From Aplysia californica (Eukaryota): 64,000 nt of DNA. The stretch is taken from assembly GCF_000002075.1 (NCBI RefSeq), contig NW_004797711.1:358538-422537 (forward strand), in the 5' to 3' direction. How positions within the stretch are numbered: the first letter of the stretch is position 1; each line of letters starts with the position of its first letter. The translations under genes and the position numbers were made by a program. Under the pieces are notes generated by a model, which saw nothing but the letters and a program-made list of their open reading frames with translations, was not told the origin of the DNA and did no database searches. Of the stretch, positions 46,158 through 61,468 are shown in pieces.

Positions 46158-49100
46158 ATGGAAGGTACCCCAAGCCAGCTTGACCTGTTGAGTAGATTCG
46201 TCTGCGTTGGATCTGAAGACGGAACATATACAGTGACCACACAGAAAAATAAGCAACAAAGTCACAGTAAGAGAAAGTCAACCTCTACAATCCTATTTTC
46301 TGCTGAAACAGAAAAACCAGAAGTTTTAAGTCCTTTCCTAGCATCAACTGAGGAGAGTTTGAGGGCTCTTGACAAGCTAAGGAAAGTATTTAAAAGAAAA
46401 TGGTACATCAGTAAGGACCCTCTGCTTTCATCCCTTGCAAGAATTGTGCGTTCTTCGGTCCCCTCCAATGAGAAAAATCATGAAAATGATGCAGTGAGAG
46501 ATCAAGCGTATAAGCTTGCACTACAAGTTTGCGAGACTTCAAAGGATCTTTTCACCTTTGTTAATTTAGATAAATTCTATGGGAAGCCCAAAGTAGACGG
46601 TAAATGTAAAGTGGGATGGGGGCGAGGTTTAAGGACTATGATTACAGAATTTTATGAGTCCAAGCCAGCGCTGAAGTTAGCTCGAGAAGTGATGCACTGC
46701 AAGCAAGCTCTGGGATTTACACACCGTGATTTGATCAGACAGTGTCACCTGCACCCCAGCAAAAAAGGCAGAGGTAAGGCTTCCTATTGGCTTTTGATGA
46801 CTACATATTGCTCTTCGGTGGAAGAGAATTTATTTTTTGTGTTTCTGTGTNNNNNNNNNNNNNNNNNNNNNNNNNNNNNNNNNNNNNNNNNNNNNNNNNN
46901 NNNNNNNNNNNNNNNNNNNNNNNNNNNNNNNNNNNNNNNNNNNNNNNNNNNNNNNNNNNNNNNNNNNNNNNNNNNNNNNNNNNNNAACATCCATCATTCT
47001 TGTGAAATTTCTCCTTCTTTTCTGTGTTTGTTGCTCTCTGGCAATACCTGTAATCTTTGGCTCTTGTATGACCTAATTGTGTTGCGAGGGCCATAAAACT
47101 TGTACTTCAACATGACAAAGCGTGTCGTGCTAGTCGGTTGGTGGGATCAGACAGACCTACCACTCATCCTTTTAATTGTGGAATGACAAACATGGACTTT
47201 TCTCAAATGTAGCCTTTATTTTTATATATATATATATATATGAAACACAGTATCTATCATAGACTCACCACTGCTCAAATGTACATCTCTGATATATGTA
47301 CATAGCATCGTCTCTGCTCGAATGTACATGTACAAAAGTGTGTCATCTCTGCCTCTTCTCCCTTCTCCTTCCTTCCTCTTTATTGCGGGTGATTGGAGGA
47401 TGCCGCGGGTAGAGCTGTCTTTCTTTCTTTTGTCTTTTTTCCCAGCACTAAGTGGCCATTTATTTGGTGATTGGGCTTCTTTTTGCTCAAACTAAATCCT
47501 TTTTACTCTTTCATCAAAGACAAGTGCTTTGCGATATTGAAATAATTTATTTGTTTCTGATGGGTAAAAGCATTTTACTTGAACAAAAAGTAAACCCACT
47601 AGCTACTGTTTACTGGGATTTTTTTTTCCGCACACTCTTTTATTTTGCATTTGTCCATTTTATTTTAAGCAAATGTTTGGAATTTGGGATTTGAGTCGCC
47701 CAGTGTCATGTATGTATTTGGGTTCCAATGCAGTAATGCCGCCTTTTCACATTTGTGAGGGATTTGAATTCGCAGATTTTAAAAAGAATCGTGAATTCAA
47801 GTAGCACACGTTAAAATAAAATAAATAAAAAGTACATAGTATCTGTTGAAACAGTGGCAGTAGCCTTGTTAGGTTGATGAACCATATTTTAAACTTGTGT
47901 GGGTTAAATCGTTGCAGGTTGTTGGGTGCGAGTGGTTGGAGGGCACCCCTGATAGGTCCTACTTCTTTTCTTTCCCTCTGTTATTTACTTCCTGTCTTAC
48001 TTGCTTTTTCTGAGTACTAAATGATGTGCTTCTCTTTAACTTTAAGCAAATAAAAGTGGTAGGATCATACATTATTGGTTTACTGGTATCTGGTGTAGGT
48101 GTTGGCACTTCTCTGTTGTAGAAGACTTGAGTTCTTTTCTGGAGGGAGGAGACATTTTTATTGAAACTCTCGATCTTTCTGCTGGGATGTTGTGTTCCTT
48201 TAGCCTGAGTTGGCTTTGATTGGCTTGGTCGAAAGCTCTCTTCCTAAATCATCTAAATAGTGATCATGGGGGTGTAAGTGAAAAAAACCACCTACATTTT
48301 TTAGAAAATGTTATCGTTTCGATCTTTCAGGCAGAGCTGAAGTAATGAATTACTTGGTGAAGGATCAGCAGCTGGTAGACTCCAAGATGGAAATGGACGA
48401 AGAGGCTCAAGCAGTGATGACCTTTCTCCAGGACGTGCACCAGCTGAAAGGAAACTTTGGAGACAACAAGGACAAAGTGCGCGTCCTGGTGGAGAAACAC
48501 GGCCTGACCAGCCAGCAGGTGCCGCCCAACTGCCTGCAGTTCAAAGAGGTACTTTACTTTACTTACTTTTCCGATCCAGCGGCTATTTGGGTTCTAGCCC
48601 TTCGGTCTGTCAATATGGCAAAGAATTGACAGGTTTTAATCAGCTGTGCTTTGTCGCTGTATAGAGTATTTCCGATGTCTGGGGAGGCAGGTAGGTAGGT
48701 GCTACACAGGTTGCAAAGTGCTGGGCAGTTAAAGAGGTGGTGTGGTACTGTTTCATCCTGGCAGTCGCACAACGGGCAGTCGGGTGGGGTATCCTTGCGG
48801 ATCCTATTAAGGGAGGAATTTAGTGGTATGTGTTGTGTTCGCAGGCGAAAGATCGTTACTTGTTGTCTTCTACTCAGGGAATTTATTGCATCTTTAGAGT
48901 TGGGGGCTGTCATGTGTGCAAATACAGTTCTTTCAGTTTTGCCCATTGCCCATCCATTGAGCCACTGTTCCCTGGTGTTGCATTTGATGATGTTCTTGGC
49001 TGTCTGTTGTGATACTGGGTTGTGAGGTTGTGTTTGTGATGCTCCCTTCTTGTCAAGGGTGTCTTCTCTAGTTCAAGGAGGTAAGATTAGATAAGACAAG

Positions 49101-61100: not shown

Positions 61101-61468
61101 CCTCCATCTTCTGAATAGTGGGGACAAATGCTTAGTCATTGCTAAAAAACTTGTTTCGTGAATAGCTCTGAAAAACAAGCAAAAACTAGCGCTTGATAAA
61201 ACGAAACAGTTGTCGCTAGTACTGGACGTTCCCAGTGTCCGATGGGGAACAGGGTTAATTCCGCCAGATGCTCCTATGGAGTTCAAAGAGTTAAACCTCA
61301 TTCTCATCTTTACTCATTTTATGTTTTGGCAGGATCGCCATTGTGGGACTGGCAGATACAGCGAAGATGGGGATGGCGAATGACTTGAATCTTCTGGATG
61401 TGTCGGGATTTGATGAAACTGTTCCCGTCCTGCTCCAAAAATTTTTCCAAGGGTATTCGGATGACTAG
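46158..61468 (+). CDS. RO60: Divergent Ro60/TROVE2-like RNA-binding protein (TROVE + degenerate vWA), 557 aa; join(46158..46773,48331..48548,52032..52183,54470..54587,56042..56182,56793..56912,59503..59675,61333..61468)
   Basis: Ro60 motifs occur in order: LSRFVCVGSEDGTY, KDPLLSSLA, DLFTFV, GWGRGLR, GFTHRDLIRQCHLHPS, LVEKHGL, GKKCLLAL, AIAEFRR, LLDVSGFD. Eight GT-AG-flanked exons have compatible phases (1,0,2,0,0,0,2) and give 1674 nt with no internal stop. Probably a paralog rather than the canonical ortholog. Confidence 0.9.
48560..49060 (-). mobile_element. LINE 3' fragment of the same RNase H family
   Basis: QVTIFRLRTQHIPLN...CPLCDCQDETVPHHLFNC. Another fragment of this family lies at ~57620-57850(-). 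Confidence 0.8.
49430..49788 (+). mobile_element. Full-length tRNA-derived SINE with CORE-like centre and L2-type tail
   Basis: A-box TGGCCTAGTGG (49439-49449), B-box GGTTCGAATCC (49483-49493), central GTTGTGTCCTTGGAAAAGGCACTT...AAATGGGTACC, and tail TGTAAAGCGCTTAGAGC...GCGCTATATAAAT(TTA)n. Related partial copies lie at ~12690-13020, ~16440-16550(-), ~37000-37120 and ~61860-61930. Confidence 0.85.
52770..53340 (-). mobile_element. RTE-type LINE 3' fragment
   Basis: KKWKWIGHTLR...WNPQGK..KGRPKMTW...AQDR..WR with a (GAT)n tail. A related fragment lies at ~640-770. Confidence 0.8.
56420..56532. repeat. 25-bp minisatellite x4.5
   Basis: CACTGTATGAGTGTATGAGTGGCCA units. Confidence 0.9.
56929..57101. 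repeat. 32-bp minisatellite x5
   Basis: AGCCTGTTTGTTGTCGTTGTTGTTAGCGATCC units. Confidence 0.9.
58140..58410 (+). mobile_element. Second tRNA-derived SINE family
   Basis: A-box TGGTGTAGCGG (58149-58159) and B-box GGTTCAATTCC (58193-58203). Homologous copies lie at ~28590-28810(-), 30100-30330(-), 33455-33670(-), 44960-45165(-), 56290-56770(-) and 63000-63340(+). Confidence 0.75.
58480..58841. repeat. 31/32-bp minisatellite x~11
   Basis: CAG(G)AGTTTTGACTGGGATCAGTATGCTCATA units. Confidence 0.95.
59100..59278 (+). mobile_element. Representative of the most abundant dispersed repeat (retroposon 3' end with GGCGCTC...GAGCGCC stem-loop and TAAAAC tail)
   Basis: Consensus GGTTGGCGGGTGCTCTGGTGTGGTTTGCTCCTTCTTTCCTATCAAAC...TGGCGCTCATATGACCTTATGCAGTTGCGAGCGCCGTAAAACCTCTACTAAAAC. 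More than 12 full or partial copies, e.g. ~7400, 17400, 19240, 24510, 27670, 29490, 47000, 51700, 55210, 55800, 60205, 60515-60990, 63430, 63955. Confidence 0.75.
61003..61290. mobile_element. piggyBac-like MITE, ~40 bp upstream of the last Ro60-like exon
   Basis: TTAA|CTCTTT...AAAGAG|TTAA. Confidence 0.55.

Follow-up and report, generated by a model that had tools for sequence, protein, structure and literature searches.

We analyzed a 64,000-nucleotide (nt) window of the Aplysia californica genome (RefSeq assembly GCF_000002075.1, contig NW_004797711.1, forward-strand positions 358,538 to 422,537), in which a gene for the ring protein Ro60 spans window positions 46158-61468. The gene, which encodes the annotated Ro60 isoform X1, shares its genome with a single further Ro60 gene. 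It probably belongs to a fast-evolving, selectively maintained paralog clade of heterobranch gastropods, with a MIDAS (metal ion-dependent adhesion site) that would have been lost before the duplication, and its product is probably an RNA-binding ring protein that does without a MIDAS metal ion. An earlier note, made from the DNA letters alone, had described the gene as an intact but rewired Ro60 paralog with a lost MIDAS and an altered central cavity.

Gene Structure and Identity of the Locus

Splice donors and acceptors were scanned for frame-compatible, stop-free junctions between the open segments of the plus strand, in which we found all eight peptide blocks listed in the earlier note. 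A single clean gene model resulted, with eight exons joined exclusively at GT-AG junctions into 1674 nt, or 557 codons and a stop. This agrees with the open reading frame (ORF) proposed earlier, an uninterrupted 557-residue chain with a TROVE and a von Willebrand factor A (vWA) domain. In a script comparison, the spliced model matches XP_005104968.1 (here P0152) residue for residue, a 557-amino acid A. californica protein that RefSeq names "60 kDa SS-A/Ro ribonucleoprotein isoform X1." RefSeq already lists the locus as a Ro60 gene of A. californica. Searches with the letters of the window were run exon by exon, and the public protein P0152 was used in full-length steps.

Exon 1 (46158-46773, residues 1-206) begins with the start ATG at 46158, ends at the donor GAG/GTAAGG, and encodes the N-terminal half of the TROVE ring. 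It is followed by exon 2 (48331-48548, residues 206-278), exon 3 (52032-52183, residues 279-329), which contains the VQHIPKM motif, and exon 4 (54470-54587, residues 329-368). The first strand of the vWA domain, β1, is encoded by exon 5 (56042-56182, residues 369-415), where N384-F-D-P-R388 (56087-56101) takes the place of the MIDAS motif DxSxS. Exon 6 (56793-56912, residues 416-455) leads into exon 7 (59503-59675, residues 456-513), which holds R461-H462-Y463 (59518-59526) at the place of the MIDAS Thr-Asp pair and E485 (59590-59592) at that of the final MIDAS Asp. Exon 8 (61333-61468, residues 513-557 and the stop) completes the Ro60-type vWA domain, as seen from the PF25045 matches. All eight exons lie on the plus strand.

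An exhaustive search with exon 1 returned a 532-residue protein with 99% identity, whose cluster consists of two A. californica RefSeq entries, isoforms X1 and X2. In the RefSeq model of isoform X2 (532 amino acids), the acceptor lies instead at 52107, which is 75 nt into exon 3, so that 25 residues possessed by homologs are absent, the IPKM helix of the ring among them; this isoform may be a genuine form or a by-product of gene modeling. The longer form of exon 3 agrees with the homologs P0009 and P0160.

Six runs of N occur in the window. Three of these fall within the gene span, all of them in introns, and leave the coding sequence uninterrupted. Around the gap in intron 1 (46851-46985), exons 1 and 2 align collinearly to P0160 residues 5-181 and 181-256, and around the gap in intron 3 (53983-54127), exons 3 and 4 have their counterparts in residues 257-296 and 306-346 of P0009. 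Homologs are collinear across both junctions with no residues missing, and our structure model is continuous there too. The third gap lies in intron 6 (57128-57453), and the RNA-derived contig described below runs straight across the exon 6-7 junction (56912/59503).

Domain Matches and Predicted Fold

Exon 1 passes the Pfam TROVE cut-off narrowly (25.5 bits, cut-off 23), and the whole protein matches the Ro60 vWA family PF25045 over residues 398-550 (44.3 bits, cut-off 27.7). Against the Protein Data Bank (PDB), exon 1 finds Xenopus and human Ro60 chains at E values of ~1e-15 (1yvp, E = 1.7e-15). Exons 2-7 searched singly gave only chance Pfam matches, the vWA exons being of insufficient length and too far diverged to be searched one at a time, and the PARP1 zinc-finger matches of exon 5 alone in the PDB were likewise rejected as chance.

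We obtained an AlphaFold2 model from a 54-sequence alignment, with a mean predicted local distance difference test score (pLDDT) of 88.8 and a predicted template modeling (TM) score of 0.90; only residues 30-47 are disordered. In a Foldseek search of the PDB, the ten best matches are all Ro60/Rsr structures that align with the model over its full length, including Xenopus Ro60 (1yvp, E = 2.4e-23), human Ro60 (9nen, TM scores 0.77/0.85), and Rsr (2nvo). The protein has the HEAT-repeat ring of the TROVE domain and the C-terminal vWA domain that characterize the Ro60 family (RO60/TROVE2/Rsr). The assertion of the earlier note that the gene is intact and Ro60-like is sustained by the ORF, by the model with its Foldseek matches, and by a spliced transcript.

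We compared the window protein to vertebrate Ro60 (RO60/TROVE2; Xenopus 1YVP/1YVR, human 9NEN). Both are of similar length, combine the TROVE ring with a C-terminal vWA fold, and contain a helix with invariant Asp and His residues that contacts the Y RNA stem. The window protein differs in that it shares only ~23% identity with its vertebrate counterparts, has all five MIDAS residues replaced, carries His and Ala at K170 and R174, and contains an extra disordered basic insertion at residues ~27-50.

Two Ro60 Genes in the Aplysia Genome

The genome (927 Mb, 4332 contigs) was searched four ways, with Pfam TROVE, PF25045, a canonical Ro60 from amphioxus, and P0152. Only three TROVE loci were found: the window gene on contig C441, a second Ro60 gene at C362:341476-352905, and a TEP1-like gene on contig C74. 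In exon 1, the C362 gene shows 44-49% protein identity to the window gene and is closer to canonical Ro60 (87.7 versus 60.5 bits to 1yvp). At C362, we found no equivalents of exons 2 and 4; assembly gaps occupy the expected places (~C362:344436-345287 and 348922-349021). These two exons appear to be lost in the gaps, which may also be the reason why no full-length C362 protein turned up in protein searches.

The third locus, on the minus strand of C74 (162000-191900), contains TROVE exons, an RGG-rich stretch, and a vWA exon with the letters D-I-S-Q-K. Exons of DUF4062-like, NACHT (GKSGSGKT), and WD40-like type come next, ruling the locus out as a canonical Ro60 and marking it as TEP1-like. 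The telomerase- and vault-associated protein TEP1 shares the TROVE and vWA module with the window protein; in contrast, the window ORF ends at 61468 after the vWA domain, without the NACHT and WD40 parts found at C74.

The window gene is therefore one of two Ro60 genes, and the expectation that a second one would be found in the same genome proved right. The genome search suggested in the earlier note was meant to provide a canonical, MIDAS-bearing Ro60 as a contrast, and no such gene is present: the C362 copy reads H-I-S-S-K at the DxSxS position.

The MIDAS Site Is Replaced in All Sampled Mollusc Ro60s

In our alignments, the window protein reads N384-F-D386-P-R388 (within LALNFDPRH) at the position of DxSxS, R461-H462 at the following Thr-Asp pair, and C484-E485 (within IVCE) at the Thr-Asp of the FTD motif. 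MAFFT places the MIDAS Thr opposite R461, and the earlier note had chosen Y463; neither residue is a Thr. Strand β1 (residues 374-384) ends exactly at N384 in the structure model, where the first MIDAS Asp would be expected. We can thus confirm that all MIDAS residues are replaced in this protein, and that it does not display the DxSxS...T...D signature of canonical Ro60.

The first MIDAS Asp is absent in 13 of 13 mollusc Ro60s, representing a cephalopod, bivalves, a limpet, an abalone, a caenogastropod, and heterobranchs. Its position is taken by Lys in Haliotis, Patella, Octopus, and Sinanodonta, by Arg in Ylistrum, and by Asn in Batillaria; every other heterobranch Ro60 reads H-x-x-x-K/R across the motif. 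The MIDAS Thr is likewise replaced in all of them. Outside the molluscs, the first Asp is also missing in the arthropod and tunicate Ro60s of Oratosquilla, Cloeon, and Clavelina, which were omitted from our 41-sequence "non-mollusc" reference set, so that the figure of 100% Asp in this set is biased upward. In practice, the MIDAS does not delimit the Ro60 family, since its first Asp is absent in every mollusc member examined.

At the MIDAS, the only changes specific to the window protein are the replacements of D462 by His and of D485 by Glu, two positions at which all other molluscs keep Asp. Because the loss of the site is common to all sampled molluscs, it is older than the duplication and does not mark a neofunctionalized copy, contrary to the possibility raised in the earlier note. 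That note had named, as an outcome that would speak against it, a sole Ro60 gene with a MIDAS loss widespread among orthologs; the gene has a second copy, and the loss is indeed widespread. The role of the MIDAS in Ro60 has been described as unclear (PMC12135203), and our literature search brought up no publication on Ro60 of molluscs or on the loss of its MIDAS.

RNA-binding Surfaces

The helix FTHRDLIRQCH (residues 187-197, plus strand 46716-46748) corresponds to WSHKDLLRLSH (residues 177-187) in Xenopus Ro60. Its D191 and H197 (Xenopus D181 and H187) are invariant in the 54-sequence alignment, where only five columns are; the window protein keeps all five (D191, H197, P332, A472, and D478). 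The D-x-x-R-x-x-H helix, which the earlier note had pointed out, is indeed kept, and the protein possesses the Y RNA-contacting helix expected of a Ro60. A H187S mutant no longer binds Y RNA (PMC11277228).

The basic residues of the central cavity are not retained. The motif KYKQR reads HCKQA, with H180 and A184 at the positions of Xenopus K170 and R174, for which a functional role in the cavity has reportedly been found. We located no paper naming K170A/R174A for Ro60 in the literature. The earlier statement that cavity residues differ stands insofar as HCKQA and VQHIPKM are both present, and falls as a description of this copy in particular: the change from LGKM to IPKM is common to all heterobranch Ro60s, and the cavity Arg is Gly in all other heterobranch Ro60s, Ser in Haliotis, and Phe in Sinanodonta. 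We also measured retention over 100 alignment columns with a conservation of 80% or more outside molluscs. Of these, 53 are retained in the window protein, 51-59 in other heterobranch Ro60s, 60 in the mollusc-clade protein P0132, and 64-71 in the Ro60s of Haliotis, Octopus, and Sinanodonta. As the window protein lies within the heterobranch range and shares its Arg loss and IPKM motif with this group, most of the rewiring is, on these alignments, a heterobranch trait.

A Heterobranch Paralog Clade

We calculated a maximum-likelihood tree (LG+C20, 30 rows), which places the window protein inside animal Ro60, within a mollusc clade (support 100/99) and a heterobranch clade (100/100) whose stem is very long, at 1.06 changes per site. 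Inside the heterobranch clade, the window protein groups with P0001, P0005, and P0010 (100/99), the C362 copy with P0009 (98/97), and the panpulmonate proteins with each other (88/81). The stem and tip branches of the window lineage measure 0.60 and 0.49, compared with 0.20 and 0.21 for C362. No window-type protein was found among the annotated panpulmonate proteins.

The window protein shares with the other heterobranch Ro60s (Aplysia C362, Lymnaea, Biomphalaria, Bulinus, Bradybaena, and Candidula) 32-37% full-length identity, the IPKM motif, and the loss of both the first MIDAS Asp and the cavity Arg. It differs from them by its separate, supported subclade and longer branch, by an Asn rather than a His at the first MIDAS position, by the D462H and D485E changes, and by a clade-specific insertion of ~18 residues (residues ~27-50, plus strand 46236-46307). 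This insertion carries a KRK/RKRK motif (K38-R39-K40 at 46269-46277 in the window protein), is found in P0001, P0005, and P0010, is absent in C362, P0009, and P0002, and corresponds to the disordered part of the structure model (pLDDT below 50, residues 30-47). Its basic character hints at a nuclear localization signal. Features specific to this paralog are hence the supported clade with its three environmental orthologs, the disordered KRK insertion, and the replacement of the two acidic residues that remain at the MIDAS in other molluscs.

P0001, P0005, and P0010 are open exon-1 ORFs on environmental contigs from three other sources, one of them a TARA Oceans metagenome, at 40-55% identity. 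P0001, of the window type, and P0009, of the C362 type, come from the same European Nucleotide Archive (ENA) assembly, which would fit another animal carrying both copies.

P0009 is encoded by a single uninterrupted 533-codon ORF on the short metagenome contigs L025 (ENA ERZ27289317, 2638 bp) and L026 (a TARA scaffold, 2030 bp), whereas the Aplysia gene is split into eight exons or more. Possible explanations are a gene or retrogene without introns in the organism concerned, or an assembly that contains RNA-derived sequence. The land snail Bradybaena similaris has three closely related Ro60 genes (P0161, P0163, and P0164), two of them on one contig, and this trio is an independent recent expansion of MIDAS-less heterobranch Ro60.

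Transcription and Constraint

A 540-nt RNA-derived contig (run X9, record 1) matches 56041-56182, 56793-56912, and 59503-59675 consecutively and without a mismatch. It joins exons 5, 6, and 7 at the modeled junctions and thus represents a spliced transcript of the gene; sparse polyA reads also fall on the exons. Comparison of exon 1 with its ortholog P0001 gave a nonsynonymous divergence (dN) of 0.45 and a synonymous divergence (dS) of 1.78, a ratio of ~0.25 that is rough because dS is near saturation. The intact ORF, consensus splice sites, spliced transcript, open orthologs, and confident fold together render it unlikely that the gene is a pseudogene.

Discussion

Our results are best accounted for by a scenario in which an ancestral Ro60 would have lost its vWA metal site before the duplication, the loss being common to all molluscs sampled, and in which a duplication within heterobranch gastropods would then have given rise to a fast-evolving, selectively maintained paralog clade. 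The window protein retains the HEAT-repeat ring of the TROVE domain, closed by the vWA domain, together with two invariant residues, an Asp and a His, of the Y RNA stem helix. From this conserved architecture and these two residues, we conclude that it most likely still is a ring-shaped protein for the binding and quality control of small RNAs that needs no MIDAS metal ion, as presumably is every mollusc Ro60. Our data establish the structure of the gene, its transcription and splicing, the fold, the paralogy, the phylogenetic position, and the residue states; RNA binding by the window protein and any division of labor with the C362 copy are inferred.

Several observations weigh against this scenario. 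Exon depth is below 1 in three polyA RNA-seq runs, which indicates very low expression, and six of the seven pairs compared for dN/dS are saturated in dS. The full-length protein has no Pfam TROVE match at E ≤ 0.01, and TROVE scores are marginal. All three orthologs of the window protein are exon-1 fragments of environmental origin, and the window clade, the C362-P0009 pair, and the panpulmonates form a polytomy that does not set the duplication and the panpulmonate split in order. An Rfam scan of the 64-kb window found no Y RNA. A genome-wide search with the Rfam Y_RNA family, in which only 51 of ~124,000 candidates were scored, found none either, and both negatives say little about absence.

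We considered whether the window gene could be a neofunctionalized second Ro60, set apart from a canonical copy by its MIDAS loss and altered cavity and forming the core of a new lineage-specific ribonucleoprotein. The presence of two Ro60 copies would agree with this, as would the longer stem and tip branches, the KRK insertion of the paralog, the additional loss of D462 and D485 in the window copy only, and the cavity changes of K170 to His and R174 to Ala. However, the C362 copy and every other sampled mollusc Ro60 are without a MIDAS as well, R174 had already become Gly in the other heterobranch proteins, the IPKM motif is common to them, and the window protein keeps as many family-conserved columns as its heterobranch relatives do. 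We therefore regard neofunctionalization in this sense as unlikely. Much less probable still is a decaying or incipient pseudogene that is open by chance: low read depth, fast evolution, and a weak Pfam TROVE score are what such a gene might display, but a 557-codon ORF over eight exons with only GT-AG junctions, a correctly spliced transcript, a confident Ro60 fold, orthologs with an open exon 1 from three further sources, a dN/dS ratio of ~0.25, and the retention of all five invariant residues are not. Finally, the assembly is fragmented and both Ro60 loci contain gaps, so that C441 and C362 might be thought of as haplotigs or mis-assembled copies of one gene. Their exon 1 protein identity of only 44-49% means that they cannot be haplotigs, and the two loci group with different orthologs from another sample; we consider such an artefact practically negligible.

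We thus favor a maintained paralog of a MIDAS-less mollusc Ro60. Functional divergence of this paralog is possible in light of its KRK insertion, lost acidic MIDAS remnants, and longer branch. More speculatively, and with considerable doubt, the second Ro60 lineage of Aplysia and of relatives represented by marine metagenome contigs might have a distinct job, for example in constitutively nuclear RNA surveillance or with a different small-RNA partner. It is, separately and with the same reserve, conceivable that the metal site is dispensable for the core function of Ro60: that a phylum replaced the first MIDAS Asp and Thr yet kept the ring, the vWA fold, and the Y RNA helix would argue for metal-dependent ligand binding lying outside this conserved core. 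The MIDAS-less mollusc Ro60s provide naturally occurring variants on which structure-function relationships can be studied, and the Aplysia pair may serve as a modest model for the subfunctionalization of an RNA quality-control protein in an animal used in neurobiology. Apart from its MIDAS and its paralogy, the gene is an ordinary, previously annotated member of the Ro60 family.

Intronic Surroundings

Two intronic stretches, 58944-59311 in intron 6 and 60232-60967 in intron 7, are covered at very high read depth on either strand in every RNA run, with many variant positions and poly-A/poly-T loose ends. An ORF-like repeat recurs in the same introns (59102-59269, 60203-60364, and 60453-60623). 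The high-depth stretches look like abundant, transcribed repeats resembling short interspersed elements that lie outside the Ro60 mRNA. Two minus-strand ORFs, in intron 2 (48563-48946) and intron 3 (52869-53187), resemble by eye the C-terminal fragments of proteins from retrotransposons of the long interspersed element type.

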